Below, piece by piece: positions 41,207-61,264 of a DNA stretch of 64,000 nucleotides. This stretch comes from Obrimoposthia wandeli (lineage: Eukaryota). The position numbers were made by a program, and so were the translations under genes. Numbering within the stretch: the stretch's first letter is position 1; the number at the start of each line of letters is the position of its first letter. The notes below the pieces were generated by a model, which ran no database searches, had not been told where the DNA came from, and worked only from the letters and a program-made list of their open reading frames with translations. The stretch lies in NCBI GenBank assembly GCA_977020255.1, contig CDROCS010000666.1, positions 186,001 to 250,000 of the forward strand. Reading direction: 5' to 3'.

Positions 41207-42211
41207 CTATTTAGCTTTACCATACACAGTGCACCAGTCATTTTTCATATCTATCAGATGCCAATTGTCTTTTTGTTTCGCTTCGTCTAGCGCTTTATCT
41301 AATCGACCAACGGATGAATCGCGATCATACTGCCATTCACGATCTGCGTCTGTATGGTGAACAATCATAGCCATACTCGGTGTATTTTGGTTGGTACTCC
41401 ATTGCATCATTGCTTGATCACCGTCAGAATTACCTACGGCAAGAATTGGCTTCTTACCAATCACACGCTGAATATTCTCTACTTTTACTTCCTTATCATT
41501 AAGAGAAGTAATCGTGTCATTTTTTGTCACCGTCGCTTTACCATCAATCATTGTGAAGTCATAACCGAAGCTACTGCCAATCACATTTTCTGGTGGTATG
41601 TTGTAGGCATCTTCTGCCCATGCACGCATGAAGTCGACACCACCACCTGAAACAATATAGGTTTTAAATTCATTATCCTTTAGGTAGGTTAACATCTCTT
41701 TCATAGGCTGATAGGTAAGTTGTTCGTAGCTACGATTAAAGCGCGGGTCTTTCTGCTGTGATACCCATTCTTTCACTTGCTTCTGAAAAGCCTCAACGGT
41801 CATTCCTGAATGTGTCACCTTAACCAAGTCCAGTAATGCCTGGTGATCTGCCGCCATTAATGACGCCATATCATCTTCTAACACCCACTTAAACGGTGTT
41901 TGCGTTTTCCATTCTGGATGGTTTTTCGCTTGTTTTTTAATTTGTTCAATCGTAAAAACAAGCTGAAAGTAAGCAGGTTTTTCAGACCATAAGGTTCCAT
42001 CATTATCAAAAACGGCAATACGATCATCCGGTGCTACATAATTCTTACTATTAGGGGTAGTAACGTCTTTAACAAAGGTTTTTATCGCTGTTCTACTTTC
42101 ACTTTCTCCCCAAGAAGGCAGCGTACTATCACTTGAATTACAAGTTGCAGCGAAGGCAGTAGTGGATGAAATAGCAAGAATAACAGCAAGTGAAAGAGTA
42201 TGGATGTGCAT
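41207..42211 (-). CDS. Secreted HAD-superfamily phosphatase
   Basis: Signal peptide (AFA), FDNDGTLWSEKP, VSGGG, GNSDGD. Start after AAGGA. Confidence 0.88.
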   Translation of the reverse strand: MHIHTLSLAVILAISSTTAFAATCNSSDSTLPSWGESESRTAIKTFVKDVTTPNSKNYVAPDDRIAVFDNDGTLWSEKPAYFQLVFTIEQIKKQAKNHPEWKTQTPFKWVLEDDMASLMAADHQALLDLVKVTHSGMTVEAFQKQVKEWVSQQKDPRFNRSYEQLTYQPMKEMLTYLKDNEFKTYIVSGGGVDFMRAWAEDAYNIPPENVIGSSFGYDFTMIDGKATVTKNDTITSLNDKEVKVENIQRVIGKKPILAVGNSDGDQAMMQWSTNQNTPSMAMIVHHTDADREWQYDRDSSVGRLDKALDEAKQKDNWHLIDMKNDWCTVYGKAK

Positions 42212-42455
42212 TAAAATAGTCCTTGGAAAATTAAAGAATATTAGTAAAACAAAAAACATCTAGCCCAAACAATATGTAAAATTACTAGTTACAATGGAAA
42301 TTAATGCTGTGTCACCCTCGTTTTTTCAGTTTTAACATAATGATTCATCGATAAACGCTCTGCATTATTACTAAATAGACGCTTTGAATTTTTAAGTATA
42401 GGAAAAATTCAAAAATAACCATATTCAAAGTGCTATTTACGATTATATTTTTTCC

Positions 42456-43724
42456 TTATCGATAAAAACCATGCTGAACGGGGTAACCCATTTGTTTTAT
42501 TATTTGTGCCATATAAGGGTCGATGTGTTTAAAGAAGCGATGCCAACCTGCACATAAATAGTTATGACCTTCTTCACCAGTAGACGATCGGGTGAAGCGA
42601 TTTTTAGGGCACTCACCAAAACAAGCAAATAAGTAATCGCAATTTTTACACTGCTTAGTTAACAATAAAGCTTTATCTCGCCCAAATGCTTCTTGCTTTG
42701 CAGAGTAAGCTAGCTCGCCCAAATCATTTTCTTTGATATTGCCAATTTTGTATTCCGGATAAACATAATGGTCGCAAGAATATACATCACCGGTTGGCTC
42801 CATAGCCAAGCCTTTTCCACACACCGAACCAAGCGTACACAGTGGGTTTACTCTTCCCATCCATGTTTCAACACTGGCTTCAAAATATTGCACAAAAACA
42901 CGTCCTACATCTTTTTGAGCCCACTCATCAAATACCGTACAAAGAAAATTGCCCCATGACTCCGCAGCAACAGACCATGGTTCCATAACACTATCGTCTA
43001 TGTTAGGGATAAGATCTGCACTGCCTAATAACGGTATATCGCCTTTATTCCAATGCTGAGGTGCTGTTGTACGAAATGTTTTTTGTTCCACTATTGGAAT
43101 GAATTGAATTTGAGGAGAGCGGACGACATCACGTAAAAAGCGATAAACCTCGAGGGGCTGACGGCTTGTTGCATTGTTGATACAGGTTAAAGTTGCAAAC
43201 TGTACTTTATATTTATGCAGCAAATCGACAGCTGCCATCACTTTATGAAAGGTGCCACGTCCTGCACGGTTTTTACGATAGGTATTATGAAGATGTTCTG
43301 GGCCATCTAGGCTTAGACCAACCAAGAAATTATTAGCTTTTAAAAAACGGCACCATTCATCATTTAATAGTGTGCCATTGGTTTGCAAGTCATTCGAAAT
43401 TGTGACACCAGCAGGTTTGTATTGTTTTTGAAATTTAACAATTTTTTTAAAATACGGGATACCTAGCATAGTAGGCTCACCACCTTGCCACGAAAAAACA
43501 ATTTCTGGTGTATTTTGATTTTCGATATATTGACGGATGTAGAGCTCTAATGTCTCATCGTCCATTTTAGGGCTGCACCCTTTTTTATAATTCAGCAGCT
43601 CTTTTTTACTTAAATAATAGCAATATTGACAGTCAATATTACACGCCGCACCAATCGGTTTAGCCATTACATGCAAGCGCTTACTTGCTTTTCCTTTAAA
43701 CAACATTGAATTTTGATCAGTCAT
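42456..43724 (-). CDS. Anaerobic sulfatase maturase (radical SAM/SPASM, AslB/ChuR family)
   Basis: MAKPIGAACNIDCQYCYY, WQGGEP, YSCDH, CKNC..CFGECPK SPASM cysteines. Confidence 0.95.
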   Translation of the reverse strand: MTDQNSMLFKGKASKRLHVMAKPIGAACNIDCQYCYYLSKKELLNYKKGCSPKMDDETLELYIRQYIENQNTPEIVFSWQGGEPTMLGIPYFKKIVKFQKQYKPAGVTISNDLQTNGTLLNDEWCRFLKANNFLVGLSLDGPEHLHNTYRKNRAGRGTFHKVMAAVDLLHKYKVQFATLTCINNATSRQPLEVYRFLRDVVRSPQIQFIPIVEQKTFRTTAPQHWNKGDIPLLGSADLIPNIDDSVMEPWSVAAESWGNFLCTVFDEWAQKDVGRVFVQYFEASVETWMGRVNPLCTLGSVCGKGLAMEPTGDVYSCDHYVYPEYKIGNIKENDLGELAYSAKQEAFGRDKALLLTKQCKNCDYLFACFGECPKNRFTRSSTGEEGHNYLCAGWHRFFKHIDPYMAQIIKQMGYPVQHGFYR

Positions 43725-43956: not shown

Positions 43957-44883
43957 TTAACGTGTTGGGTTGGGAATAACAGGAATTGCGAAGAAACGTA
44001 GATTCCACGTTGGACCAAATTCATCAGCCTGCTGAACATAATAATGTAATTCTGCACCAATCCGCACAGGCATAGGACCAACCTTAATCATGGTATCGCC
44101 ACCAAAACCAACAGGAATGGTGTACTTATCACTTCCACTTTCATTCCAGTCAATTTGAATATTTGGACCGAAACCAATTTGCGTAGTTGGCGTTACGCGG
44201 TAACGCAATACGTATTGAATGTCGGTTAAATTAAGGTCTTCTTCCTCTTTGGTCTCGAGATTCATTTTCTTTGAATCCCCCATTCCCCACCAATGCTGAA
44301 CCACACCACCATATACCCATTCATCACCTAGGTGGAATGCAGTAACAGCAGGACCAACAGCCCATTGATCTGCCCCTTGAGTACTTAGAAAATCTTCTGA
44401 TGCTGTTGGTATTAACGAGGTAAAGCCAACACCCCAAATATTATTGTTTATAGGGGTTGCAGGGCCTAGTACGCCAAGTAACGCTGTATCGCCCATACCC
44501 GTTTCGCGCTTTTTACCAGGAGCTTCCATACTTAAGTGTTGGATAACTGGTCGTACAATAAAGTTATAATCTTCTGTTAAACCAAATGACATAACAGGTT
44601 GAAATTTAAAACTATTAATTGTGTAGTCATTACCCGCCTTATCTTCATATTGATAAGTGTCATTTTGAGTAAACAACATCCAAAGATCAGATACCGGATT
44701 ATTTAACTTAGCGGCTAATTCACCAAGATTTTCAGATTCACCTTCCGCGATTTCTGGTACAACTTTTTGTGAAACATCCGATTCATTGTTGATTGATTTT
44801 TCTGGATTAGTATTATCAGCCCAAACGGGAGATACTGATACTAATGTTGCGATAACGCCAGCTAAAATAGTCTTACTTGTCAT
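43957..44883 (-). CDS. Outer-membrane channel-like protein (family often auto-annotated neuromedin U)
   Basis: Signal peptide, LAAKLNNPV, FQPV, GMGD, QWAVGP and amphipathic strands. Confidence 0.7.
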   Translation of the reverse strand: MTSKTILAGVIATLVSVSPVWADNTNPEKSINNESDVSQKVVPEIAEGESENLGELAAKLNNPVSDLWMLFTQNDTYQYEDKAGNDYTINSFKFQPVMSFGLTEDYNFIVRPVIQHLSMEAPGKKRETGMGDTALLGVLGPATPINNNIWGVGFTSLIPTASEDFLSTQGADQWAVGPAVTAFHLGDEWVYGGVVQHWWGMGDSKKMNLETKEEEDLNLTDIQYVLRYRVTPTTQIGFGPNIQIDWNESGSDKYTIPVGFGGDTMIKVGPMPVRIGAELHYYVQQADEFGPTWNLRFFAIPVIPNPTR

Positions 44884-45177: not shown

Positions 45178-45771
45178 TTAGTTAATTAAACCATGATTAA
45201 TCGCATATTGAACCAACTCAGCACTGGTTTTAACATTAAGTAAGCGCATCATGGCATACTTGTGAAATTCAACAGTACGCGAAGAAATAAACAATTCTTC
45301 AGCCACCTGTTTTGCCGATTTCCCTTTCACTAATAACTGTAAAACACTCAGTTGACGTGCTGTTAACGCGGGTTTCTCACTCGTCATATCAATAGAATTT
45401 GAAATATAGCGACCACCATTCATTACAGTATCAACCGCTTTAACTAACTCTTCACCGGCTTGGTGTTTTAATACATAACCATTCGCACCTGCTGCAATTG
45501 CACCTTCCGCATATTCAGGTTCATCATGCATGGTTAAGCAAATCATTTTTACTGATTTAAAATCACGTCTAAGACGCGCAACAGCGGCAATACCAGTCAT
45601 ACCCGGCATACTGATATCTGTAATAACAAGATCCGGTTGATGTTTTTTAACCAGTGCTATTAACTCTTCACCATCTTTAGCAATAGCCAATACTGTATGT
45701 TCTGGTTCAAGTAAACTCGCCACACCTTGCGCTACAATAAGATGGTCATCAGCCAACACTAAATTACTCAT
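45178..45771 (-). CDS. NarL/LuxR-family response regulator
   Basis: ADDH, ITDISMP, GYVLK receiver motifs; LTARQ..TVEFHK HTH. Confidence 0.95.
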   Translation of the reverse strand: MSNLVLADDHLIVAQGVASLLEPEHTVLAIAKDGEELIALVKKHQPDLVITDISMPGMTGIAAVARLRRDFKSVKMICLTMHDEPEYAEGAIAAGANGYVLKHQAGEELVKAVDTVMNGGRYISNSIDMTSEKPALTARQLSVLQLLVKGKSAKQVAEELFISSRTVEFHKYAMMRLLNVKTSAELVQYAINHGLIN

Positions 45772-46966
45772 AAAAATCGTCCTCTAGAGGTATAGTTATT
45801 GAAACCATAAACCCACCTTCAGCAGGCGAATCAAAAGATGCCCTACCATTAAATTGTTGTGTTCGCTCAGTCATACTTACCAAGCCTAAATTACCTTTTT
45901 TCTCTTTAATATCAGTTTCTAATCCAACACCATCATCATTTATTTGAAAAAAAAGCTGATTATTACGTACTTCTAATATCACAAAAACATTGGTTGCTTG
46001 AGCATGCTTTATAACATTGCCTAGCGATTCTTGTAGTATCCGGTAAAGGTTTAATGCAAGTGCTGATGCTAATTGAGGTAGAGGGTCAATTAAACAATGG
46101 ATCTCTAACGCTGTAAGCTTATTGACTCGTCTACACTCCGCCTTTAGCGCAGCAGCAAGCCCTAAATCTTCGATAATTGCAGGGTGAAGCGAACGTGATA
46201 GCGTTTGCATATCACCCGCTAACTGCTGGATAGTTAAATACAATTTTTTGGCATCATCCACTTCTACTTTATCTTTTTCAATCGCATTGACTATATTGCC
46301 AGCTTTAATACTTAGCAATGCCATGCGCTGTGAAAAATTATCATGTAGCTCTCTTGATAATGCGCGCCTTTCTACTTCTTGATTTTCCATTAAGTGCCGA
46401 GATAGCAACACTAATTGTTTTTGCTGTTCACGTGTTTTCAGCCATAACGTATAACGCTCAAAAATAGCCGCAAGGTACTGAGCAAAAGTAGTAATCCTTG
46501 TAATGAAAACATCTTGCCAATGCTCATGTTCATGAAAGCGGCTCATTGTTATCGCTCCCCAAATTTTTCCTCTGACTTCAACTGGGCATATTAAGTGAGC
46601 AATAACACCTTCCATTCGCGCATATTCAAATTCAGCAGCTGTCATCACATTCAATGACATGTCATCAACAGCAATAACATTACCCGCAGAGATATTTTTC
46701 AGATATATACCTTCAGGATTAGCCAAATGAATACGTGGTTTTTCTATTCCGTCTTTAGCAACAGAACAGGCACCTTCAAGTCTCCCCTCTTCCGTTAGTC
46801 GAATCATCGACATACGACCGACATCAAACAATATCATGAGCTGTTCGAGCGTTTGCTCCATTTTCTTTGGTACATCCACCATATCCACCTCAATAAACTC
46901 GCGAGATACAGTCGAAAAAAAAGCTTCAGCTTCAGATAGTTGAGAAGACATCCAAGTCTCAGGCAT
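45764..46966 (-). CDS. Soluble GAF-HisKA_3 sensor histidine kinase
   Basis: LSRELHDNFSQ H-box, ESLGNVIKHA, DDGVG, GLVSMTER. N-terminal GAF-like region with no TM segments. Confidence 0.9.
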   Translation of the reverse strand: MPETWMSSQLSEAEAFFSTVSREFIEVDMVDVPKKMEQTLEQLMILFDVGRMSMIRLTEEGRLEGACSVAKDGIEKPRIHLANPEGIYLKNISAGNVIAVDDMSLNVMTAAEFEYARMEGVIAHLICPVEVRGKIWGAITMSRFHEHEHWQDVFITRITTFAQYLAAIFERYTLWLKTREQQKQLVLLSRHLMENQEVERRALSRELHDNFSQRMALLSIKAGNIVNAIEKDKVEVDDAKKLYLTIQQLAGDMQTLSRSLHPAIIEDLGLAAALKAECRRVNKLTALEIHCLIDPLPQLASALALNLYRILQESLGNVIKHAQATNVFVILEVRNNQLFFQINDDGVGLETDIKEKKGNLGLVSMTERTQQFNGRASFDSPAEGGFMVSITIPLEDDFYE

Positions 46967-48866: not shown

Positions 48867-48976
48867 ACATCATTTAAACCATCATGCCTCTGCCAAAATG
48901 AAGTGAAACCTCATTTATCAGAGGCATTTTAATTTAATAGAGGCATGCGTTTTAGCCACTCCAGTTAGGTATTCCT

Positions 48977-49852
48977 ATGAAACGTTCGTTCTTTTCAATC
49001 AGCATTGTTTGCTTATCTCTCGTTACCTTATTTGGTTGCAACGAATCAAGCCGCAATACACAAAATAACACGGTAAAAAGCGACAAAGCACAAGCAACTG
49101 TTGACGAAAACCCATTATTAACCAGCATTATGAAAAACATGGTGCATGTTGAAGGTGGTGATTTCGAAATGGGTTCAAATAATGAATCCGCTTCTCTTGC
49201 AGAACAACCGCGTCACTCTGTCAGCGTAAATAGCTTCTACATCGATAAATATGAAGTTACACAAAAGCTGTTTGAAACCGTAATGGGATCATCTAACAGT
49301 TATTTCTCTGGTGATGATTTTCCAGTAAACAATCTAAGTTGGCAGCAAGCTAATTATTTTATTGAGCAACTCAATAAACAAACAGGTAAGCATTTTCGTT
49401 TACCTACCGAAGCAGAATGGGAATACGCTGCACAGGGCGGAAATAAAACGCAAAATTATGTGTATAGCGGTTCAAATAATATTGCTGATGTTGCTTGGTA
49501 TGCTGATAACGCCAAAAATAAAGCACACCCTGTTGGCATGAAACAGCCCAATGAACTTGGATTATATGACATGACAGGCAATGTGGGCGAGTTTGTAATC
49601 GATGCTTACGAAGAGAACTACTACTCTCGCCTTACTGATAACCGCGAACCCAACCAAACACCGTCTGTAAACAATCCTTCTACAAACAACCCAGCGAACG
49701 TTGTTGATTCAACACATCCGCTAGCCTACAAAAGTGTACGAGGGGGAAGTTATTCATACGCCGTCAATGAATCTGAAAATTATCGTCGAGATTCAGCAAG
49801 CCAAACCGCCATAATGGCAGATATGGGACTTCGCTTAGTACTGTCGAATTAA
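48977..49852 (+). CDS. FGE-sulfatase (SUMF1-fold) domain lipoprotein, apparently non-catalytic
   Basis: Lipobox LFGC, YEVTQ, RLPTEAEWEYAA, NELGLYDMTGNV, RGGSY; no Cys in the domain. Confidence 0.85.
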   Translation: MKRSFFSISIVCLSLVTLFGCNESSRNTQNNTVKSDKAQATVDENPLLTSIMKNMVHVEGGDFEMGSNNESASLAEQPRHSVSVNSFYIDKYEVTQKLFETVMGSSNSYFSGDDFPVNNLSWQQANYFIEQLNKQTGKHFRLPTEAEWEYAAQGGNKTQNYVYSGSNNIADVAWYADNAKNKAHPVGMKQPNELGLYDMTGNVGEFVIDAYEENYYSRLTDNREPNQTPSVNNPSTNNPANVVDSTHPLAYKSVRGGSYSYAVNESENYRRDSASQTAIMADMGLRLVLSN

Positions 49853-51909: not shown

Positions 51910-52896
51910 ATGGATAAAGCACAACACGCCGTGAATCAAATTTACCAAACGGTCAGTCAATCTGTGATTGGGCAACAACACGTAGTAAAAGCCTTGGTGA
52001 TTGGATTATTGACCAATGGTCACGTTTTACTCGAAGGATTACCCGGCACAGCAAAGACCCGCTCCATTAAAGCCCTTGCGAATGCAATGAATGCTTCGTT
52101 TGGCCGTATTCAGTTCACCCCCGATTTATTACCATCGGATGTCACGGGCACCGAGGTCTACCAAGAAGTGAACGGTAAACCCAGCCTAACCTTTCAGCCG
52201 GGTCCTGTTTTCAATTCTATTGTGCTGGCAGATGAAATAAACCGTGCTCCCGCCAAAGTGCAAGCAGCACTACTTGAAGCCATGGCCGAAGGCACATTGA
52301 CTGTTGGTGATGTAACCCACCAACTACCAGAATTATTCATGGTACTGGCCACACAAAACCCGATTGAACAAGAAGGCACATACCCACTACCTGAGGCACA
52401 AATGGATCGCTTTCTCATGAAAGTTACTGTCGATTATCCCGACGATGAAGCGGAATTAGCGATCATTCGTCTTGTGCGCAGTGAAGAAACACCCGCTACT
52501 GACGAACAAGCAACACAAAAAAATACAGTTACTGTCGATCCCACTTATATTTTAGAAGGTCGCGCTGCACTGCAACACATCCACATATCAGAGGTGATTG
52601 AACGCTATATCGTCGGACTCGTGATGGCAACCCGCGATCCTGATCGTTATCCCAACAGTGCGCTCTCAACATGGTTAACCGCAGGTGCCAGCCCACGAGC
52701 TTCAATTGCTCTAGATCGTTGTTCCCGCGCCCATGCGTGGTTAGAAAGCCGCGACTTTGTCGACCCAGATGATGTGCGTGCAATAGCTCATGAAGTACTT
52801 GGTCATCGACTCATTTTAAGCTACGACGCCATTGCCGAAGGTATTACTGCCCGTGATGTGGTGAATGAATTATTAAATACCGTAGTGATTGGATAA
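51910..52896 (+). CDS. moxR: MoxR-family AAA+ ATPase
   Basis: GLPGTAKT, RIQFTPDLLPSDVTG, LADEINRA, ATQNPIEQEGTYPLPEAQMDRF, GASPRA. Confidence 0.95.
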   Translation: MDKAQHAVNQIYQTVSQSVIGQQHVVKALVIGLLTNGHVLLEGLPGTAKTRSIKALANAMNASFGRIQFTPDLLPSDVTGTEVYQEVNGKPSLTFQPGPVFNSIVLADEINRAPAKVQAALLEAMAEGTLTVGDVTHQLPELFMVLATQNPIEQEGTYPLPEAQMDRFLMKVTVDYPDDEAELAIIRLVRSEETPATDEQATQKNTVTVDPTYILEGRAALQHIHISEVIERYIVGLVMATRDPDRYPNSALSTWLTAGASPRASIALDRCSRAHAWLESRDFVDPDDVRAIAHEVLGHRLILSYDAIAEGITARDVVNELLNTVVIG

Positions 52897-52899
52897 GCC

Positions 52900-53940
52900 A
52901 TGGGCAAAGATCAGTCCCACCCTCACCCCCAAGTACAATCACGTTCAACTGCACGTGAAGGCACTGCACAAAAAAGCACTGCGCCGTTGGATCCTCGTTT
53001 ATATTGTGACTACAAAACCTTGCTGCACTTGAAAGGTCAAGCTCAGGGTTTTAGCTTTCTGCCGCATCAACGCGCAGGTAGTGTGCTGGCTGGTCGTCAT
53101 CAATCCCGCTTTCGTGGTCGTGGCTTAAACTTCGAAGAGCTACGTCATTATCACAAAGGCGATGATATTCGCACCTTAGATTGGCGTGTCACCTTACGTA
53201 CAGGTAAGCCTCATGTACGCGCCTACAGTGAAGAAAAAGATCATAAAATCATTTTGTGTGTCGACCAATCGCAAAGTCTATTCTTTGCCTCATTGGATAC
53301 GATGAAGTCTGTCGCGGCGGCACACATCGCCGCCTTAAGTGCATGGCGAGTAATCGCCGATAATGATCGCGTTGGCGCCTTGATATTTAACGACCACCAG
53401 CATCAATGGTTTGAACCACAACGAAGCCAACACCATGTGCTTCGTCTGTTACAAACCCTGACCCAATATAACCAACAGCTATCGGCACAAACGTCGCACC
53501 TTTCAGAAACTCATTCTTTAGCGCCTACTCATGCCGCGCAGACCACAGCGTTACTGACCGCAATCACCCGCTTGAATCGTACCCAACCCAAAGACTGTGT
53601 TTTTGTGTTTATCAGCGATTTTCAACATACCGACGAAGCATGTATTGAACAATTAAAACGACTACAACGACACAATGACGTTTTGTGTGTGTGGGTTGCC
53701 GATCCAATGGAAAAAAAATTACCAGAATCAGGCCGGTTTATTGCCAGTGACGGACAATTGCAATTAGAAGTCGATGCCACCGATCAGCGCTTGTTTACAG
53801 GTTTTTCACAATCATTTGCAGATAAACATACCAGCCTCAGTGATTTACTCGCCCGCAAAAAATTACCATTAATCGAAGTTGATACTTCGGGTAATCACTT
53901 ACACCAATTCCGTACCGCATTAGGAAATCGTGTCTCATGA
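52900..53940 (+). CDS. DUF58 protein
   Basis: GRGLNFEELRHY..GDDIRTLDWRVT, VDQSQS, FISDF. Confidence 0.92.
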   Translation: MGKDQSHPHPQVQSRSTAREGTAQKSTAPLDPRLYCDYKTLLHLKGQAQGFSFLPHQRAGSVLAGRHQSRFRGRGLNFEELRHYHKGDDIRTLDWRVTLRTGKPHVRAYSEEKDHKIILCVDQSQSLFFASLDTMKSVAAAHIAALSAWRVIADNDRVGALIFNDHQHQWFEPQRSQHHVLRLLQTLTQYNQQLSAQTSHLSETHSLAPTHAAQTTALLTAITRLNRTQPKDCVFVFISDFQHTDEACIEQLKRLQRHNDVLCVWVADPMEKKLPESGRFIASDGQLQLEVDATDQRLFTGFSQSFADKHTSLSDLLARKKLPLIEVDTSGNHLHQFRTALGNRVS

Positions 53941-54560
53941 CGATCCTTATATCGACACTCTCGACTTCTGACAGTTCTGCAACCGCCAATGCCAGTAGCT
54001 ATGTCTTACGTGAATTGGTAGAAATTCCTTTACCCTTTTCTATCAGTTGGTGGCCGCAAACTATCGGCTGGAAAATACTCGGTATCTGCTTAGTTATTGG
54101 TGTGCTATACGGCTGTTATCGTGCTGCGGTGCATTGGTGGCACAACCGCTATCGTCGTGAAGCTTTAGATGCTCTTATACATGTCAACCTCATGCAGCCT
54201 TACACTGCTTTGGTTGAGCTATCACGTATCACTAAAATTACACTCAACTATGCCTTCCCAACACAAACAGCTTCACTTATGGGTACGCCTTTATTGACCT
54301 TCTTAGATGCTACCGCGCCAACACAACTCAATACGCCATTAGGTATACGCTGGCAACACGCCTTGTTGCGCGCACCCGATGACAATGCGTTAAGCAACGA
54401 AGAAATCCAACAACTTAAGCAACAGTTAATTCTTTGGGTTAAACATCATCGCCGTCAGTCAACAGCACACATCAACAGCTCTGACCTTAAAAGTACCTCT
54501 AGCCTCAAGAACAACCCTAACAGCGAATCGATGACCAACAAGGAATTGCCCCATGATTGA
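53937..54560 (+). CDS. DUF4381 membrane protein
   Basis: LVEIPLP..ISWWPQTIGW, TM, YRREAL. Confidence 0.85.
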   Translation: MTILISTLSTSDSSATANASSYVLRELVEIPLPFSISWWPQTIGWKILGICLVIGVLYGCYRAAVHWWHNRYRREALDALIHVNLMQPYTALVELSRITKITLNYAFPTQTASLMGTPLLTFLDATAPTQLNTPLGIRWQHALLRAPDDNALSNEEIQQLKQQLILWVKHHRRQSTAHINSSDLKSTSSLKNNPNSESMTNKELPHD

Positions 54561-55635
54561 GTTGGCCCATCCTTGGTGGTTGCTCGTGCTTCCACTACCG
54601 TATTTGGTATATAAGTTCATACCCGCCTATCGCACTCGTCGTGCAGCAGTAAAAGTGCCCTTTTTTGACGTGCTCAATGCGTTAATTCCTGATGCGCCAT
54701 CTGAAGGTGCGGTGAAGCTACGTCCTTCTTGGTGGCAACGCATCGCACTATTGACAACATGGTTAATGTTGGTCTTTGCCATGACGCAACCCATGTGGCT
54801 TGGAAAACCCCAAACACGTACACTCATAGGCCGTGATGTGATGGTAGTGGTCGATTTATCAGGCTCGATGGCAGAAAAAGATTTTGTCACTCCCGACGGG
54901 GGAAAACACACACGCCTCGATGCTGTTAAACAGGTGTTGGCACAATTCAGTCAACATCGTGATGGTGATCGTCTTGGCCTAATTTTGTTTGGTGATGCCG
55001 CGTATTTACAAGCGCCATTTACCGCCGACCATGACGCATGGCTAGCCTTGTTAGACGAAACACAAGTCGGCATGGCTGGGCAAAGTACCCATTTAGGTGA
55101 TGCTATTGGCTTAGCCATCAAAGTCTTTAATGATCAAGCCGACGCCGCAAAACAAACAGCAACCCAACAAAGTTCAGCTGTTGTCGCTCGCCCAGTCAAA
55201 GAAAAGGTCGTTATCGTTCTGACTGACGGTAACGATACCGACAGCCTTGTTCCACCACTTGATGCAGCTAAAGTAGCAGCCAGTCGTGACATTCGCATTC
55301 ACATGATCGCAATGGGCGACCCTCGTACTGTAGGTGAGCAAGCCCTTGATATGGAAGTTATTGAACAAGTGGCGTCTTTAACCGGAGGGCAATCATTCCA
55401 AGCCTTGTCACCCGCCGAACTTACTCGCGTGTACAAAAAAATCGGTGAATTGGAACCTCAACAATATGACAGCACCACGTACCGCCCAAAAACCAGCATG
55501 CACTTTGTGCCAATCATGGTGGCCTTAATGATTTACCTGTTCGCCTTCTCGCTTACAACTTGGCATGCCAGACGTAAATTGCCTGGTAAAGGATCAAAAA
55601 AATCGGCTATAAGCGATGGAGGTTCACATGTTTGA
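54553..55635 (+). CDS. BatA-like VWA membrane protein
   Basis: VVDLSGSM MIDAS, DRLGLILFG, THLGDAIG, LTDG. Confidence 0.9.
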   Translation: MIELAHPWWLLVLPLPYLVYKFIPAYRTRRAAVKVPFFDVLNALIPDAPSEGAVKLRPSWWQRIALLTTWLMLVFAMTQPMWLGKPQTRTLIGRDVMVVVDLSGSMAEKDFVTPDGGKHTRLDAVKQVLAQFSQHRDGDRLGLILFGDAAYLQAPFTADHDAWLALLDETQVGMAGQSTHLGDAIGLAIKVFNDQADAAKQTATQQSSAVVARPVKEKVVIVLTDGNDTDSLVPPLDAAKVAASRDIRIHMIAMGDPRTVGEQALDMEVIEQVASLTGGQSFQALSPAELTRVYKKIGELEPQQYDSTTYRPKTSMHFVPIMVALMIYLFAFSLTTWHARRKLPGKGSKKSAISDGGSHV

Positions 55636-57340
55636 TTCTCTGATTTGGCATCAATTTCATTTCATTCGCCCATGGTGGTTACTCACTTTTATCCCTTTTA
55701 CATGGCTTATTTTCCAACGTTGGCAGCACGATGCACAAAACGAACAGTGGCAAAAACTGCTTCCCGCGCATTTATTGGCCGCCCTTACCGTGGGTGATAA
55801 TGGCTGGAAAAAACAACTACCACTCAAAATACTGACGATTGTGATCGCGGTTTCAATCATCATTTGTGCGGGTCCAACTTGGCAACGCCAGTCCTCGCCA
55901 TTTGGTGAAGATAAATCGCCCGTAATGGTCGTGATGGATGTGTCACAATCGATGCTGCAAACCGATATCGCACCCAGCCGCCTTAGCCGTACCAAGCAGA
56001 AAGTAGAAGATTTATTAACGATGCGTGATGGCGGTCGTACAGGATTGATCGTCTATGCTGGCAGTGCACACCTCGCCATGCCATTAACGCAAGACATTGA
56101 TATTTACAAGCCATTACTGAATGCCGTCACACCCAAAATCATGCCGCGCGATGGCAAGTTTGCAGAGTACGCTTTGCCATTGATTGAGCAGCAATTTGCT
56201 TCTAATCAGCGTGATAATGCACAACCCGCTGATACAGCGAATACCGATACATCTAAAAAGAATACCTCTGAACAAGTGACACAAGATCCACCAGCGTCAA
56301 TTGCAGGCACAGTCGTCTTGTTTACCGATGGAATGGGTGCCAACACGGTAGAAGCCTTCCAACAGTATTTTCAAGATTCACCGCATCAACTCTTGGTAGT
56401 TGCGGTCGGTAACCCCGACAAGCCAAGTGATATCCCTCTCGACATTAATGGCTTACAGACGTTAACCAAGGCTTCTAATGGGAAACTTGAGATGCTTACG
56501 ATCGACAATCAAGATATGGAATGGGTTAACAGCCAAATCAACCGCCACATGCAACTAAGCCTCGACAGTGCCTTACCGTGGCAAGACATGGGGTATTACT
56601 TAGTTTTTGTAGTCGCTTTGTTATTTTTACTGTGGTTCCGCAGTGGTTGGTTAGTTCAATGGTGTATGGCGGGCATGTTAGTTTTTGGTGCCCTATCACC
56701 CAATACTGCTGAAGCCAGCGATTGGCATTTTGCTGATATTTGGATGACAGCCGATCAACAAGGGCAATGGTACTTCAATCAAGAAGACTACGTGACTGCA
56801 TCTGAACGCTTTGCAGACCCAATGTGGAAAGGGGTTGCCTTGTATTCAGCTGGCGATTACAAAGCCGCCCACGCCTATTTCATGCGGGTCGACTCTGGCC
56901 AAGCATTGTTTAATGCCGCCAATGCCTTAGCCCATGCCCGCGAATACGTGCCTGCACGAAACTTATATGACGCGTTATTGGTACAGAATGATGCCTTTCC
57001 CAACGCCCAACACAATCGCGATGTACTACAAGGCATTATCGACAACATCAATATGCAAAGTGAAAGCCAGGCGAACACCGAGAATGAAGCTTCACGAGAA
57101 CTCGGAGATGCCCCGCAAACCGCAGACGGTGCCGATGAGCAAGTCGCGAAAGAATTGGTATTAGAAGAGGCGTTAACCGCAGAGCAATTACTGCAAGATG
57201 AAGCACTGAACGCACGCTGGATGCAGCGAGTACAAGCCGACCCTGCTCGTTTTTTATCGACCAAATTCAATTTACAACTTAATCAAACTAACCAACTGAA
57301 TCAAACTAACCAGCTTAATCAAGCCAAGGAGGCAGAATGA
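55628..57340 (+). CDS. BatB/BatC-like VWA plus TPR protein
   Basis: DVSQSM, PSRL, FTDG, then TM and TPR (ALFNAANALA). GGAGG RBS before ATG55628. Confidence 0.88.
   Translation: MFDSLIWHQFHFIRPWWLLTFIPFTWLIFQRWQHDAQNEQWQKLLPAHLLAALTVGDNGWKKQLPLKILTIVIAVSIIICAGPTWQRQSSPFGEDKSPVMVVMDVSQSMLQTDIAPSRLSRTKQKVEDLLTMRDGGRTGLIVYAGSAHLAMPLTQDIDIYKPLLNAVTPKIMPRDGKFAEYALPLIEQQFASNQRDNAQPADTANTDTSKKNTSEQVTQDPPASIAGTVVLFTDGMGANTVEAFQQYFQDSPHQLLVVAVGNPDKPSDIPLDINGLQTLTKASNGKLEMLTIDNQDMEWVNSQINRHMQLSLDSALPWQDMGYYLVFVVALLFLLWFRSGWLVQWCMAGMLVFGALSPNTAEASDWHFADIWMTADQQGQWYFNQEDYVTASERFADPMWKGVALYSAGDYKAAHAYFMRVDSGQALFNAANALAHAREYVPARNLYDALLVQNDAFPNAQHNRDVLQGIIDNINMQSESQANTENEASRELGDAPQTADGADEQVAKELVLEEALTAEQLLQDEALNARWMQRVQADPARFLSTKFNLQLNQTNQLNQTNQLNQAKEAE
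57278..57325 (+). repeat. 18-bp coding tandem repeat (about 2.5 copies, LNQTNQ)
   Basis: cttaatcaaactaaccaa / ctgaatcaaactaaccag / cttaatcaagcc. Confidence 0.8.
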
Positions 57341-58899
57341 GCCATTATCATTCGTTTAATTCATGGCTTGTACGTGTCCGCATTATAACTTTATTTCTCG
57401 GCGGACTGATTGCCTTCATTTTACCTGCGCACGCTGAAACGCTACAAGATTTAGAACGCCAACACCGCGTAACCATCAACAGTTGGCTTAGTACCGATCA
57501 TTCCGCAACCAACACGAATATCAATATCGACCAAGCTAACTCAGCTTTTGCTTCAACCATTTCAGAAACGACACCTTCCACACCAAAAAACGCAGCCAAA
57601 CCTGTCGCTATTGGTGAGCAAGTGATCCTCTACATTGAGATCGCAACCGATCGCTGGCTAACAGCAGGTACACAGATTGGTTTGTTCGAGGTAGATAATG
57701 CCATTGTTTTACGGCGAAAAAATCTCGCGACGAATTTTACCCGCCGCACAAATGGGGAAACTTGGACCCACCAGCGCTGGGAAATCACCCTATATCCTCA
57801 AAAAAGTGGGCAATTTGTAATACCTCCCATTGCAGTCACATTGCAAATATCGGCGTCTACTAATAATAATGTGCGCGGCACCTTATTAACCCAGCCACAC
57901 CGTTTTAATGCGGCGTTACCATCACCGTATCTCACCGAAGACACGCCTTGGGTCGCGGGGGAAGATGTTACGCTAACTCAATCTTGGAACCAAAAAGAAG
58001 AAGCGCCACTGGTAGTTGGTGATGCTATTGAACGCACTATCACCTTAACAGGCAAGAATACGTCAGCCATGCTATTCCCAATATTAACGCCAGCCACCAC
58101 CCCACAAGCTCAATTGTATACAGCACCAGAAACATTAACCGACAGTCAAAATCGCGGGGAATATACCGCCAAACGTATCGACCGTTATACCTATATTGTG
58201 CAGCATAATGGCACAATCACTTTGCCACCTGTTCGCCTACAATGGTGGGATACACAAGCACAACAATTAGTCACATTAAAAGCACCCGGTGCAGAGTGGC
58301 ACATTCGACATACACCCACATCATTTTTAAAAGCGTATTGGCTGCCCTTATTGATCTCGCTATTCAGCATCGTTTTAATGATATGGATAGTGATAAGAAC
58401 AGTAAAAAAATATCGAAATCAGCCACTTCCGTCACACTTTGCCTTTCTATTAGCAATAAAACGCCAACAATGGCCATTCGCTAATCTATTATTATATCGG
58501 AAACTCCATAAACATCAGCATCGGTATTTACTGTCTGAGGCTGAACAAAATGAACAGACAATGCCTGCAACGAAAAAGAACACAAATTCACAAGAAACAC
58601 GAGCAGGCAATCAGTGGCATCAAGTTGTAATGCAATGGCAAACCGCGTTGTACAGCACTGTCCCTACATCCCCCTCTCCGCAACGAGGTTGGCGCTTATG
58701 GCATGGCATTAAGCAACCTGTTCGACGTTTATGGTCATGGCGAATACCTGCGGCCTTACCACAGTTAAAAGAACAGTTACCACACACAACGCCCATAGCA
58801 AAGTCTGCGATATCTTCAACACGGGAGTTCGCAACCAAAATAACAAAGAACACGCCACGTAATACGGAGCAAAAGAATGACAATGATGTCAGCAATTAA
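57337..58899 (+). CDS. BatD family protein
   Basis: GEQVILYIE, YPQKSG..IPPI, VGDAIERTITL, LQWWD; last Bat gene. Confidence 0.85.
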   Translation: MSHYHSFNSWLVRVRIITLFLGGLIAFILPAHAETLQDLERQHRVTINSWLSTDHSATNTNINIDQANSAFASTISETTPSTPKNAAKPVAIGEQVILYIEIATDRWLTAGTQIGLFEVDNAIVLRRKNLATNFTRRTNGETWTHQRWEITLYPQKSGQFVIPPIAVTLQISASTNNNVRGTLLTQPHRFNAALPSPYLTEDTPWVAGEDVTLTQSWNQKEEAPLVVGDAIERTITLTGKNTSAMLFPILTPATTPQAQLYTAPETLTDSQNRGEYTAKRIDRYTYIVQHNGTITLPPVRLQWWDTQAQQLVTLKAPGAEWHIRHTPTSFLKAYWLPLLISLFSIVLMIWIVIRTVKKYRNQPLPSHFAFLLAIKRQQWPFANLLLYRKLHKHQHRYLLSEAEQNEQTMPATKKNTNSQETRAGNQWHQVVMQWQTALYSTVPTSPSPQRGWRLWHGIKQPVRRLWSWRIPAALPQLKEQLPHTTPIAKSAISSTREFATKITKNTPRNTEQKNDNDVSN

Positions 58900-61264
58900 T
58901 CGCATGTATTCCCTACAGCAGTCAAAGCACAGCTGGGCTGTATTATCACGCTTGAACCAGAGTAAAGTTCAATCTAGCACGCGACAGACACTAAGCCCTT
59001 TGCTTCTGGGTTTGATTCTTCTATTGAGCGCTTTCACGACACACGCTGAAGATCAGCCCCAATCTCATCAAACAGTGAACACTCAGGCAGGCTCGTCACT
59101 GACCTATGTTGGTACAGACGCCTGTATTGATTGCCACAAGAACGAGTACAAAGAATGGCAAGGTTCTGATCATGATATGGCGATGCGCCATGCTGATACA
59201 GAATCTGTATTGGGTAACTTCAACAATGTTTCTTTAGAATCAAAAGGACAAACTAACCGCTTTTTCAAAAAAGGCTCTGAATACTGGGTAAATATTCAGG
59301 ACGCTGACGGTAAATTTAACAATTATAAAATCAGCTATACCTTTGGTTTTAAACCCCTGCAGCAATACATGGTCGAATTTGAAGATGGCCGTATTCAACT
59401 GATTCCCTTTGCGTGGGATTCCCGCCCCAAAGCCGATGGTGGTCAACGTTGGTTTAATCTTTATCCCGACATAAAAAAAACAGATGAATTTTTCTGGACC
59501 AATACGGGGCAAAATTGGAATTTCATGTGCGCCGACTGCCACTCTACAAACCTGAAAAAGAACTACGATAAAGCCACCGATACTTACAACACCAGCTGGT
59601 TTGAAATTAACGTCGGCTGTGAAGCTTGTCATGGCGCAGCCAGTGAACATATGGCATGGACCGAAAAGCAAAACGCCACAACCCCACATACTGGCTTCGA
59701 TCGTGATTTAGGGTTGGCAGTAAAGGAATGGGTTTACCAAGAAGGTGAAACAACCTTGCAACCGAAATCCATTACACCAACTGATCAAACCCAAGTTTGC
59801 GCACAGTGTCATAGCCGTCGTATGCAATTGAATGAAGACGCTAATCATGTAAAAGACAAATTTCTCGACCGCTACATGTTAAGCATGATAACGCCAGAAT
59901 TGTATGAAGATGACGGGCAAATTTTCGACGAAGATTACGTATTAGGTTCATTCTTACAATCGAAAATGCACGATAAAGGTGTGGTATGTTCTAACTGTCA
60001 TAACCCTCATACCACTGAATTAAAAATTCCTAAAGAAGCCGTGTGTTACCAATGCCATATCGCATCTGAATACACGACAGAAAAACACACCTTCCATGAG
60101 GCGGGAACTGATGGCGCGCAATGTACCAGTTGCCACATGCCACAAACGACGTACATGCAAGTCGATCCTCGTCGCGATCATAGCTGGCAAGTACCGCGTC
60201 CAGACCTAAGCAAAAATATCGGCACACCCAATGTGTGCACCAGCTGCCATGAAGACAAAGACAGCAACTGGGCCGATAAGCAAGTGGGAGAATGGTTCCC
60301 TAATTCGCCTTATCGCAATAAAGCACATTTCGCGAACGCGTTTTATGCCGCTGATCTTGGTTATCAAAATGCAGGTGATTCGTTATCTTATATTGCCCAA
60401 GATATAAAACAGAGTGACATCATTCGCGCCTCAGCACTTCAACGCCTCGAACGTTATCCTAGCCGTAACAGTGTGGTTGCTTTAGCACGCGCCGTTAAAA
60501 ATGACAGTGAGATGATTCGCTTAGGGGCTGTTCAAGGCTCTGCTCCTTATCCGTTTTCGCAACGCTGGCAGATTATAGAGAAACTTCTGACGGATTCTGT
60601 ACTGGCAGTTCGTGCTGAAGCCGCAGGAGCTCTTGCGAGTAGCTGGCAAGAAATGACACTAGTGCAACGTGAAAAGCTTGCCGCTCCGTTACAAGATTAT
60701 ATCGACATCCAAAATTTCAATGCTGATCGTGGATTTGGACGCACTAATCTCGGTAATATTTATTTAGCGCAGGGGTTATATGAACAAGCAGAAAAAGAAT
60801 ATTTAGGGGCTATTAGCATTGAACCCAACTTTGCCAATAGCTATGCCAATCTTGCTGACCTTTATCGAGGACAACGACGAGATAAAGATACGATCACCGT
60901 ATTGCAACAAGGCATGAAAGCACAGCCTAATTCAGCACTACTACCCTATAGCGCTGGCCTTGCCATGTTCAGGCAGAAAAACCAAAGTGAAGCGATTCGT
61001 TACCTACAACTAGCGACAGAAATCGATGCGAATAACCCGCAGTATTGGTATGTTTACGGTTTAGCCATAGAAAGTAACAATGTGTCTGAGGCGGGTAAAT
61101 CACTCGAAAAAGCCTATAACTTGAGTGGTAACCCTCAACACTTATTTGCATTATGTGACCTACAAATTCGCTATAAGAGCCCTTCCGCTTCAGCCTGCAT
61201 TAGTCAGCTCGAAAAAATAGCGCCACCGGAAGCCGTCAATCAATTGAAAGCTAAAATGAAATAG
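58877..61264 (+). CDS. Exported octaheme c-type cytochrome with HEAT-like and TPR repeats
   Basis: Eight CxxCH motifs (CIDCH, CADCH, CEACH, CAQCH, CSNCH, CYQCH, CTSCH twice), then RASALQRL/RAEAA helical repeats and TPRs. True start uncertain. Confidence 0.9.
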   Translation: MTMMSAINRMYSLQQSKHSWAVLSRLNQSKVQSSTRQTLSPLLLGLILLLSAFTTHAEDQPQSHQTVNTQAGSSLTYVGTDACIDCHKNEYKEWQGSDHDMAMRHADTESVLGNFNNVSLESKGQTNRFFKKGSEYWVNIQDADGKFNNYKISYTFGFKPLQQYMVEFEDGRIQLIPFAWDSRPKADGGQRWFNLYPDIKKTDEFFWTNTGQNWNFMCADCHSTNLKKNYDKATDTYNTSWFEINVGCEACHGAASEHMAWTEKQNATTPHTGFDRDLGLAVKEWVYQEGETTLQPKSITPTDQTQVCAQCHSRRMQLNEDANHVKDKFLDRYMLSMITPELYEDDGQIFDEDYVLGSFLQSKMHDKGVVCSNCHNPHTTELKIPKEAVCYQCHIASEYTTEKHTFHEAGTDGAQCTSCHMPQTTYMQVDPRRDHSWQVPRPDLSKNIGTPNVCTSCHEDKDSNWADKQVGEWFPNSPYRNKAHFANAFYAADLGYQNAGDSLSYIAQDIKQSDIIRASALQRLERYPSRNSVVALARAVKNDSEMIRLGAVQGSAPYPFSQRWQIIEKLLTDSVLAVRAEAAGALASSWQEMTLVQREKLAAPLQDYIDIQNFNADRGFGRTNLGNIYLAQGLYEQAEKEYLGAISIEPNFANSYANLADLYRGQRRDKDTITVLQQGMKAQPNSALLPYSAGLAMFRQKNQSEAIRYLQLATEIDANNPQYWYVYGLAIESNNVSEAGKSLEKAYNLSGNPQHLFALCDLQIRYKSPSASACISQLEKIAPPEAVNQLKAKMK

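Follow-up and report, generated by a model that had tools for sequence, protein, structure and literature searches.

The window analysed, a 64,000-nucleotide stretch of the Obrimoposthia wandeli assembly GCA_977020255.1 (contig CDROCS010000666.1, positions 186,001 to 250,000, forward strand), carries DNA of a marine Photobacterium-like bacterium and contains a 15-gene island in which two exported sulfatases lie next to their maturation enzyme, a MoxR/Bat gene set and an octaheme cytochrome (Table 1). Pfam and NCBIfam profile scans placed every gene at its open reading frame, and the initial annotation's description of a leftward and a rightward arm with these gene identities was confirmed, the outer-membrane channel being assigned by predicted fold. 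None of the 15 genes is a glycoside hydrolase, TonB receptor or sugar-catabolism gene, consistent with the earlier statement that this is not a polysaccharide locus by gene content. From moxR to the cytochrome gene, neighbouring genes are 3 bp apart or overlap by 4-23 bp. However, a strong hairpin and the best promoter-like site in the region lie between sulfatase 2 and moxR (consensus matches only), indicating that the right arm is probably several transcription units rather than one operon. No shared operator motif was found in the intergenic regions.

Table 1 Features of the sulfatase island (positions within the 64,000-nucleotide window)
Position	Strand	Feature	Supporting observations
41207-42259	-	Exported HAD-family phosphatase	Pfam HAD/Hydrolase; DNDGT nucleophile motif; signal peptide follows an internal Met; E 1.4e-92 to PDB 4ovy, which has no assigned function
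42456-43724	-	Anaerobic sulfatase-maturating enzyme (anSME; radical SAM/SPASM)	TIGR03942, 494.6 bits against a curated cut-off of 349.45; Pfam Radical_SAM and SPASM; CX3CX2C motif (CNIDCQYC in the first 40 residues)
43957-44883	-	Predicted outer-membrane beta-barrel channel of the COG4313 type, 308 aa	No Pfam or NCBIfam hit; AlphaFold model pLDDT 78.7; best PDB match 4rl8, a COG4313 channel
45178-45771	-	NarL/LuxR-type response regulator	Pfam Response_reg and GerE
45764-46966	-	Cytoplasmic GAF-HisKA_3 histidine kinase	Pfam GAF, HisKA_3 and HATPase_c; no hydrophobic segment
47280-48866	+	Sulfatase 1, Sec-exported, Cys-type S1	Pfam Sulfatase, 157 bits; QSCTAGR motif
48977-49852	+	FGE-fold lipoprotein	Pfam FGE-sulfatase, 141 bits; no cysteine after the lipobox
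50152-51702	+	Sulfatase 2, Sec-exported, Cys-type S1	Pfam Sulfatase, 175 bits; QSCTAGR motif
51717-51744		Palindromic hairpin just after sulfatase 2, followed by a promoter-like site at 51832-51861	12-bp stem
51910-52896	+	MoxR-type AAA+ ATPase, cytoplasmic, island-specific paralogue class	Pfam AAA_3, 204 bits; AAA_lid_2, 72 bits
52900-53940	+	DUF58 (VWA-like) protein, cytoplasmic	Pfam DUF58, 145 bits; no hydrophobic segment; starts 3 bp after moxR
53937-54560	+	DUF4381 single-pass membrane protein	Pfam; one hydrophobic segment at residues 42-60
54553-55635	+	BatA-like VWA membrane protein	Pfam VWA and VWA_2; hydrophobic segment at residues 316-334
55616-57340	+	BatB-like VWA membrane protein with C-terminal TPR-like region	Pfam VWA_2 and TPR_2; weak NCBIfam BatA/BatB matches; hydrophobic segments
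57337-58899	+	BatD-like protein	Pfam BatD, 48 bits; signal or anchor segment and a late membrane segment by hydropathy
58877-61264	+	Membrane-anchored periplasmic octaheme c-type cytochrome fused to a HEAT/TPR solenoid	8 CXXCH motifs; model pLDDT 87.4
61300-61323	+	Terminator-like hairpin after the cytochrome gene	10-bp stem with 6 G-C pairs

Sequence and predicted structure of the island proteins

Both sulfatases match Pfam PF00884 over its full length (profile positions 1-300 of 301) and carry the C/S-X-P/A-X-R motif with the residue that becomes formylglycine. In sulfatase 2, GDDIG, GKNHLG, the His of the 'rmhf' stretch, TDNGP and the Lys of the 'sekn' stretch, corresponding to the metal-binding Asp-Asp and Asp-Asn and the catalytic Lys/His pairs, align with the equivalent positions of arylsulfatase A. 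Sulfatase 2 is highly conserved, being 86-87% identical in Vibrio and 77% in a Nitrospirales MAG, and its nearest solved relative is PsFucS1 (7aj0) of subfamily S1_13 at 204 bits (PMC8484680), although the SulfAtlas subfamily itself was not assigned. Orthologues of sulfatase 1 (857-896 bits) lie divergent from, or upstream of, sulfatase 2 in Vibrionaceae and Colwellia, and orthologues of the anSME (709-718 bits) lie in the Vibrio and Aliivibrio islands. The island differs from known anSME-dependent systems of the AtsB/ChuR type, which are a sulfatase plus a maturase, in adding a MoxR/VWA machine, a cysteine-less FGE-fold lipoprotein and a multihaem cytochrome; the CXAXR sulfatases beside its anSME are of the client class named for that enzyme (PMC2459300).

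The FGE-fold lipoprotein is not a copper-dependent FGE, as its only cysteines are in the signal peptide and lipobox and matches to solved FGEs stop before the C-terminal catalytic Cys pair. Orthologues in the Vibrio and Aliivibrio islands also have one Cys. Like pFGE/SUMF2 (PDB 1y4j), the non-catalytic paralogue of FGE, it has the FGE fold without the catalytic cysteine pair and is encoded with sulfatases, but it is a bacterial lipoprotein closer in sequence to TvpA (2y3c), PorK and PvdO than to SUMF2, and binding to sulfatases was not assayed.

The 308-aa protein was compared with 4rl8 by structural alignment (TM 0.64/0.73, rmsd 3.6 over 264 columns), and its model shows a helix at residues 52-59 followed by a run of strands, in keeping with a COG4313 beta-barrel with an N-terminal helix. 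No match to Pfam Phenol_MetA_deg (PF13557) was obtained even at E = 10, although one of the Atlas structural neighbour clusters carries PF13557 in 11% of its members.

The closest known proteins to the cytochrome are the OcwA/NrfA-related multihaem cytochromes: its best fold match outside the TPR region is OcwA (PDB 6i5b, PMC6703420; Foldseek E 3e-8, TM 0.54 by target), and there is a weak Pfam Cytochrom_C552 hit. Sequence identity to OcwA is 16%, and the island protein has eight haems rather than nine, no CXXCK motif, an added N-terminal beta domain and a 300-residue HEAT/TPR solenoid. Five invariant His and four invariant Met residues are candidate distal ligands that could ligate all the haems, but these were not paired with individual haems in the model, leaving undecided whether any haem has the open or unusual distal position of a catalytic NrfA/OcwA-type cytochrome; their number suggests electron transfer rather than catalysis.

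The moxR-DUF58-batA-batB-batD families and order correspond to the Bacteroides aerotolerance (Bat) operon, whose order is moxR-DUF58-batA-batB-batC-batD-batE, and the MoxR has the core, lid and DUF58/VWA neighbours of the MoxR-proper AAA+ ATPases. Separate BatC and BatE TPR genes are absent, the TPR regions being fused to BatB and to the cytochrome. Bat function is unknown, Leptospira Bat mutants reportedly gave no clear phenotype (PMC3557215), and aerotolerance or stress phenotypes were not examined here. A search against PADLOC models for anti-phage MoxR/VWA conflict systems gave no hit for any of the seven proteins.

Conservation of the linkage in other genomes

The initial annotation had named a lack of co-occurrence across genomes as one of the grounds for abandoning the proposed coupling, and this was clearly not observed. 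In 151 Vibrionaceae genomes, 43 of 44 sulfatase 2 orthologues (80% identity or more) lie directly upstream of the cytochrome orthologue, 130-390 bp away and on the same strand. At the genome level, 57 genomes have both, 3 the cytochrome only, 7 the sulfatase only and 84 neither (Fisher p = 9e-30, not corrected for phylogeny). Among 43 distant cytochrome loci with 12 kb or more of flank, 12 have a sulfatase of this subfamily within 4.2 kb (binomial p at most 2e-6), spanning Planctomycetota, Nitrospirales, Burkholderiales, Alphaproteobacteria and Acidobacteriota, and the sulfatase is by far the commonest neighbour family of the cytochrome. The QSCTAGR motif was found in 34 of 36 cytochrome-linked relatives. 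In other phyla the cytochrome sits beside the same sulfatase subfamily and the same HAD phosphatase without Bat genes: homologues of the HAD phosphatase lie directly after sulfatase-2-like genes beside the cytochrome in eight loci, and homologues of the channel lie near the cytochrome in six. The cytochrome belongs to a large, unnamed family (more than 588 loci in the genome contigs searched), present in about 6% of sampled Gammaproteobacteria and in several other phyla, whose commonest neighbour is a hydrolase rather than a redox enzyme.

About 63 of 67 island-type MoxR genes lie within 5 kb of a CTAGR sulfatase, including those of the 7 genomes that have the sulfatase but no cytochrome. In Vibrionaceae this sulfatase-linked MoxR class (65-78% identity) is distinct from a near-universal class elsewhere in the genome (56-59%). 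In Aliivibrio chromosome 1 the order is sulfatase, anSME, moxR, DUF58, DUF4381, batA, batB, batD, with a 5 bp gap between anSME and moxR. Three gene orders were seen (sulfatase 2-cytochrome-Bat, sulfatase 2-Bat-cytochrome and sulfatase-anSME-Bat), indicating that the linkage survives rearrangement. However, the sulfatase-Bat link was seen only in Vibrionaceae, Colwellia and a Moritella-like contig, which are related lineages, such that shared ancestry inflates the counts. A periplasmic paralogue of the cytochrome's HEAT/TPR domain follows the anSME by 22-88 bp in Vibrio and Aliivibrio. The sulfatase is therefore the hub, with Bat and the cytochrome as separate accessories.

The link is not obligatory. 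In a sample of 401 gammaproteobacterial genomes, 14 loci of the sulfatase subfamily outside Vibrionaceae had no cytochrome or Bat genes in the available flank, and six of those ten genomes had no cytochrome at all; neither accessory is therefore generally required. The two-component pair is not conserved with the island, as Vibrio islands carry LysR or hybrid kinases instead. Marine-sediment metatranscriptome contigs, which are assembled and could include DNA, carry pieces of sulfatase 1, the FGE-fold gene, sulfatase 2, moxR and DUF58.

A proposed role in sulfatase maturation

The initial interpretation, a periplasmic pathway for an unknown small sulfated or phosphorylated substrate linked to redox chemistry, was supported in part. 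The conserved linked set and the recurrence of the HAD phosphatase and channel in distant phyla agree with it, and no functional description of the unit was found in the literature that could be searched. The link to redox chemistry is still a guess, and several accessory genes (anSME, the cysteine-less FGE-fold lipoprotein, MoxR-Bat and the HEAT/TPR module) look like sulfatase biogenesis factors rather than steps of a catabolic pathway.

The favoured reading, given a probability of about 0.6, is of a sulfatase-centred island in which most other genes serve to make or use the two sulfatases. The gene identities, the intact catalytic residues of sulfatase 2, and the conserved linkage of the sulfatase subfamily to the island-specific MoxR-DUF58-DUF4381-BatA-BatB-BatD set and, independently, to the cytochrome are direct findings of the analysis, whereas the mechanism is inferred. 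In this view, the anSME converts the motif cysteine to formylglycine in the cytoplasm, the sulfatases are exported by Sec, and the cytoplasmic MoxR ATPase, with DUF58 and the membrane VWA proteins, drives a late maturation step at the membrane, most likely loading of the active-site Ca2+. No experiment bears on any of these steps, and Ca2+ loading, which was not measured, rests only on analogy with the MxaR/S/A/C/K/L proteins of periplasmic PQQ methanol dehydrogenase. The cysteine-less FGE-fold lipoprotein and the HEAT/TPR solenoid would act as periplasmic sulfatase-binding modules, and the channel would admit a small, probably hydrophobic or aromatic ester, from which the sulfatases remove sulfate and the HAD enzyme removes phosphate. 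The octaheme domain would either take electrons from a redox-active product such as a quinol or catechol, or couple maturation to the redox state, with no basis here for choosing between the two.

Both this island and the Mxa system have a MoxR-class AAA+ ATPase with DUF58/VWA-type proteins encoded beside a c-type cytochrome and a periplasmic Ca2+-dependent enzyme, and in the Mxa system each of the six genes is needed for Ca2+ incorporation (PMC12276312). Here the client would be an S1 sulfatase rather than a quinoprotein, and the cytochrome is an octaheme HEAT/TPR protein rather than the monohaem electron acceptor cytochrome cL; one-to-one homology of DUF4381 and BatD with MxaA and MxaK was not examined, and no biochemical data exist. 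Bat operons are widespread and have had no defined client or mechanism since they were named, the methanol dehydrogenase system being the only MoxR/VWA set known to finish a periplasmic enzyme. A sulfatase genetically tied to its own Bat paralogue is a concrete candidate client that is simple to assay (colorimetric sulfatase activity, Ca2+ content and formylglycine occupancy), making the question directly testable in culturable Vibrio or Photobacterium, and the finding also bears on heterologous production of active marine sulfatases. A broader possibility, which is not excluded but is considered unlikely, is that Bat-type MoxR/VWA operons are periplasmic enzyme-finishing machines with this sulfatase subfamily as their first identifiable client, and that the cytochrome is a new kind of periplasmic redox partner for alkaline-phosphatase-superfamily hydrolases, which would either form or repair the formylglycine or gate sulfatase maturation by redox state.

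Alternative readings of the island

The best alternative, although unlikely, is a periplasmic catabolic pathway, as proposed in the initial annotation. In this reading the channel imports a sulfated or phosphorylated redox-active small molecule, the hydrolases free it, and the cytochrome oxidises the product into the respiratory chain, with Bat as a general envelope stress module that happens to lie nearby. The recurrence of the channel, HAD phosphatase and sulfatase beside the cytochrome without Bat in distant phyla is in its favour, as are the implication of COG4313 channels in uptake of hydrophobic molecules (PMC4493636), the role of the fold relative OcwA as a terminal oxidoreductase (PMC6703420), and a PafA/NPP-type phosphodiesterase that recurs in the islands. 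However, no substrate is known, no gene for further catabolism of any product is present, and the island-type MoxR is a separate paralogue that tracks the sulfatase even without the cytochrome and is fused into one operon with the sulfatase and anSME, indicating that Bat is not a bystander.

A less likely reading is that the cytochrome is the missing oxygen- and SAM-independent formylglycine maker for CXAXR-type sulfatases, with its HEAT/TPR solenoid holding the exported sulfatase and the haems taking the two electrons from the motif cysteine. This was suggested by the CTAGR type of the cytochrome-linked sulfatases, a type assigned to anSME rather than FGE (PMC2459300), by the lack of a detectable anSME in 14 of 15 non-Vibrionaceae genomes with a cytochrome-adjacent CTAGR sulfatase, by the missing catalytic cysteines of the FGE-fold protein, and by the HEAT/TPR paralogue behind the anSME, read as co-transcribed with it. 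The idea was weakened when tested, as the distribution is not complementary: six genomes with a CTAGR sulfatase have neither anSME nor the cytochrome, so another route must exist. In addition, FGE-family genes are present in the three genomes checked, one lies next to a subfamily sulfatase at one of the loci examined, the invariant His and Met residues could give all eight haems a sixth ligand, and the window itself has an anSME.

Least likely is linkage by history alone, through one mobile or ancestral island spread among related marine Gammaproteobacteria without functional dependence, for which the confinement of the Bat linkage to related families, the unusual conservation of sulfatase 2 across phyla (which could reflect horizontal transfer) and a rise in G+C from about 0.40 to 0.47 across the Bat genes can be cited, but against which stand the three gene orders, the 5 bp anSME-moxR gap, up to three paralogous sulfatase-Bat islands per genome, and recurrence of the cytochrome-sulfatase pair in at least five phyla with different surrounding genes.

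Gene content and predicted properties of the island proteins

ORF listing together with Pfam and NCBIfam scans confirmed every gene named in the initial annotation, at the stated coordinates, so the observation held in full. The left arm, on the minus strand, holds a GAF-HisKA_3 kinase, a LuxR-type response regulator, a 308-aa protein with no family, an anSME (TIGR03942, 494.6 bits against a cut-off of 349) and an exported HAD phosphatase. The right arm holds two sulfatases, an FGE-fold lipoprotein, moxR, DUF58, DUF4381, two VWA genes, batD, and a 795-aa protein with eight CXXCH motifs and TPR repeats, and from moxR to the cytochrome the genes are 3 bp apart or overlap by 4-23 bp. A structural model of the 308-aa protein, built with six homologues (pLDDT 78.7), had the COG4313 outer-membrane channel 4rl8 as its best solved match (TM 0.64/0.73), indicating that the annotation of this protein as an OM channel is right. 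None of the 15 genes is a glycoside hydrolase, TonB receptor or sugar-catabolism gene. The window is positions 186001-250000 of contig C666 of assembly G000, which is 1.35 Gb in 6912 contigs and holds several bacterial chromosomes, with at least 79 sulfatase-domain matches on many contigs, and searches of it therefore mix organisms. One of these matches lies on the same contig (C666) beyond the end of the window, a flank that was not read (see table).

Both sulfatases carry QSCTAGR, the CXAXR variant of the formylglycine motif, and neither has a twin-arginine signal, so export is probably by Sec. Sulfatase 2 aligns with arylsulfatase A at the metal-binding and catalytic positions and should be an active enzyme; its nearest solved relative is PsFucS1 (7aj0) of subfamily S1_13, at only 204 bits (PMC8484680). 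The FGE-fold lipoprotein was considered as a true FGE, but this was rejected as it has no cysteine beyond its lipobox and hence cannot work as the copper-dependent FGE; its nearest solved relatives are TvpA, PorK and PvdO rather than true FGEs, and it resembles the non-catalytic pFGE in lacking the catalytic cysteines. The HAD protein has the DNDGT motif and matches the structural-genomics entry 4ovy (E 1e-92), which has no assigned function. MoxR and DUF58 have no hydrophobic segments, whereas DUF4381, BatA, BatB, BatD and the cytochrome each have at least one, giving a picture of a cytoplasmic ATPase attached to a membrane complex. An anti-phage reading of the MoxR/VWA genes was rejected as there was no PADLOC hit.

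The model of the cytochrome is confident (pLDDT 87.4) and shows an N-terminal anchor followed by three further regions (see table). Outside the TPR region the best fold match is the nonahaem OcwA (6i5b), which is related to NrfA, HAO and MccA (PMC6703420). Across 50 homologues the eight CXXCH motifs are invariant, as are five further His and four Met, which is enough to give every haem a sixth ligand.

Coordinates of sequence features, predicted cytochrome regions and loci outside the window
Location	Feature	Context
Window 48867-48976	Strong hairpins	After sulfatase 1
Window 51703-51909	Strong hairpins and a TTTATA-18-TATAAT site	After sulfatase 2 and before moxR
Window 51717-51744	Hairpin with 12-bp stem	After sulfatase 2
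Window 51832-51861	Best promoter-like site in the region	Before moxR
Window 61300-61323	Hairpin	After the cytochrome gene
Window 50000-58000	G+C rises from about 0.40 to 0.47, relative to the rest of the window	Sulfatase 2 and the Bat genes
Cytochrome residues 103-194	Beta domain	
Cytochrome residues about 200-470	Haem-rich region	
Cytochrome residues 485-795	HEAT/TPR solenoid	
L104:8887-10017 (V. splendidus)	Di-haem CCP/MauG-family gene	With a hybrid histidine kinase, follows sulfatase 1
L105:10157-11839 (V. splendidus)	PafA/NPP-type phosphodiesterase (Pfam PF01663)	
L105:14350-15426 (V. splendidus)	Periplasmic HEAT/TPR protein of about 350 aa	After the island's anSME
L107:8493-9527 (A. logei)	Periplasmic HEAT/TPR protein of about 350 aa	After the island's anSME
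C666:259390-260445	Sulfatase	Beyond the end of the window

Linkage of the sulfatases to the Bat genes and the cytochrome

Absence of co-occurrence across genomes had been set out in advance as an outcome that would count against the initial annotation, and the linkage was examined first within the same assembly and then in public genomes. Two other bacterial contigs of the assembly carry the same set in other orders, with sulfatase 1 > sulfatase 2 > cytochrome > moxR ... batD on the Colwellia contig C253 and sulfatase 2 > moxR ... batD > cytochrome on the Moritella-like contig C506, while three further cytochrome homologues, at 36-40% identity, stand alone. A scan of public genomes with a three-sequence alignment of the cytochrome found more than 588 loci in many phyla, of which the best 80 were annotated using the window's own proteins as phmmer queries, so that families absent from the window were seen only through clustering and a few Pfam scans. 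Of the 56 loci with at least 12 kb of flank, 22 have a sulfatase of this subfamily (400 bits or more) within 0-4.2 kb, and among the 43 distant loci the figure is 12, including Planctomycetota, Nitrospirales, Burkholderiales, Methyloceanibacter, Acidobacteriota and Microbulbifer. Nine of these 12 also carry the HAD homologue next to the sulfatase and none has Bat genes. With a generous background of ten subfamily genes per genome, the binomial probability is 2e-6. Clustering of all flank ORFs showed the sulfatase to be the commonest neighbour family, in 28 loci, followed by the Bat genes in 13-14 loci, all in Vibrionaceae or Colwellia, with the rest being mostly generic regulators. The closest public cytochrome, 83% identical and from Photobacterium sagamiensis (locus L020), has no sulfatase-2 or Bat genes upstream, and lies beside the NPP enzyme and a CTPTR-type sulfatase on a contig that ends just after it. 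In locus L044 and four similar loci, family members lie next to a cytochrome b and further multihaem c-type cytochromes, not sulfatases, and the family probably has more than one context.

In a sample of 151 Vibrionaceae genomes searched with three queries, the cytochrome was found in 60 genomes and the sulfatase subfamily in 64, with 57 genomes having both, 3 the cytochrome only, 7 the sulfatase only and 84 neither. Of the 44 sulfatase-2 orthologues at 80% identity or more, 43 lie 130-390 bp upstream of the cytochrome on the same strand, the exception being in genome G049. MoxR splits into classes: a 56-59% identity class occurs in nearly all genomes, elsewhere on the chromosome; a 65-78% class of about 67 genes is almost always (about 63) within 5 kb of a CTAGR sulfatase, including in all seven genomes that lack the cytochrome; and a 59-62% class sits 3-4.5 kb from a further sulfatase paralogue. 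Adjacency was read by eye from coordinate tables, and the counts within Vibrionaceae are not corrected for shared ancestry. In Aliivibrio logei chromosome 1 the genes run sulfatase > anSME > moxR > DUF58 > DUF4381 > batA > batB > batD, with 5 bp between anSME and moxR. The sulfatase-Bat link therefore does not depend on the cytochrome, and the sulfatase-cytochrome link does not depend on Bat, making the sulfatase the hub.

The island in Vibrio and Aliivibrio also includes the cysteine-less FGE-fold lipoprotein, an anSME orthologue at 709-718 bits, a PafA/NPP-type phosphodiesterase, a LysR regulator, and a periplasmic protein of about 350 aa that is homologous to residues 503-793 of the cytochrome (33% identity, E 5e-53) and starts 22-88 bp after the anSME. 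The same second hit lies 12-18 kb from the cytochrome in many Vibrionaceae genomes, whereas the window has no such gene. The HEAT/TPR solenoid thus exists in two forms, one fused to eight haems and the other standing alone and co-transcribed with the known maturase, which points to a sulfatase-handling role for that domain. The phosphodiesterase recurs in the sulfatase-Bat-cytochrome islands (also on contigs C506 and C253 and at cytochrome loci L020, L021, L026 and L032), while the window carries the HAD phosphatase instead.

In the reverse test, a 401-genome sample of Gammaproteobacteria, the sulfatase subfamily occurs in 11 genomes, the cytochrome in 25, and both in 5 (Fisher p 2e-4, or 2e-3 without the Vibrio). 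Of the 14 subfamily loci outside Vibrionaceae that were retrieved, several on short contigs, none had the cytochrome or Bat genes in the available flank, two had the NPP enzyme, one the channel and one an FGE-like gene. The accessories are therefore frequent partners, not general requirements.

Proposed maturation of the exported sulfatases

The closest worked example is methanol dehydrogenase, for which a MoxR/VWA complex that inserts the metal has been proposed (PMC12276312). In order to compare Bat and Mxa proteins directly, the mxa cluster was sought in methylotroph genomes, but the MoxR hits retrieved were an ordinary Bat operon and unrelated loci, and the analogy relies on the published work. 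S1 sulfatases are also periplasmic Ca2+ enzymes. It is therefore proposed that the anSME acts in the cytoplasm, that the sulfatases are exported by Sec, that the island's MoxR-Bat paralogue finishes them, most likely by Ca2+ loading, and that the FGE-fold lipoprotein and the HEAT/TPR solenoid hold the client; the channel, the sulfatases and the HAD enzyme would then act on a small ester. The analysis demonstrates the identity of the genes and their linkage, whereas each step of this mechanism is an inference. The initial annotation's reading of a periplasmic pathway for a small sulfated or phosphorylated substrate, linked to redox chemistry, is supported only in part, and for the octaheme domain two options are retained, namely oxidation of a redox-active product or redox control of maturation. 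Searches of the literature combining sulfatase, MoxR, Bat names, VWA and multihaem cytochrome found no paper that describes this unit; the single sulfatase mention in the MoxR-vWA conflict-system paper concerns the FGE-like domain as an effector.

The possibility that the cytochrome itself makes the formylglycine was also examined. CXAXR sulfatases are assigned to anSME, and FGE is assigned to CXPXR (PMC2459300), yet a Colwellia MAG, a complete Nitrospirales chromosome and a Microbulbifer isolate have cytochrome-linked CTAGR sulfatases but no anSME. However, when 22 more non-Vibrionaceae genomes carrying the sulfatase were checked for a distribution complementary to that of anSME, anSME was not found in 21 of them whether or not they have the cytochrome, including six that have the sulfatase but no cytochrome, and FGE-family genes are present in the three genomes checked. 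There is no complementary pattern, and the idea loses most of its support, although it is not excluded. One detail fits ordinary anSME logic: in Vibrio owensii (locus L029) an extra, Ser-type sulfatase paralogue (SSTAGR) is followed directly by its own anSME gene, between the cytochrome and moxR, consistent with the rule that Ser-type sulfatases need anSME. A MauG-like di-haem peroxidase next to sulfatase 1 in V. splendidus was rejected as a conserved maturase, as it was found in that one locus only (L104).

Transcription signals and base composition

Based on the hairpins that follow sulfatase 1, sulfatase 2 and the cytochrome, and the promoter-like site that precedes moxR (see table), the right arm is probably four transcription units: sulfatase 1, the FGE-fold gene, sulfatase 2, and moxR through the cytochrome. 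A search for a shared operator motif in the island's intergenic regions found only AT-rich near-matches, and an Rfam scan of positions 40000-64000 found nothing. Three small marine-sediment metatranscriptomes from one study hold 150-290-nt contigs at 91-99% identity that cover sulfatase 1, the FGE-fold gene, sulfatase 2, moxR and DUF58; this is compatible with expression in nature, but DNA carry-over cannot be excluded and no control stretch was compared. The base composition of the island is not uniform, with G+C elevated across sulfatase 2 and the Bat genes.
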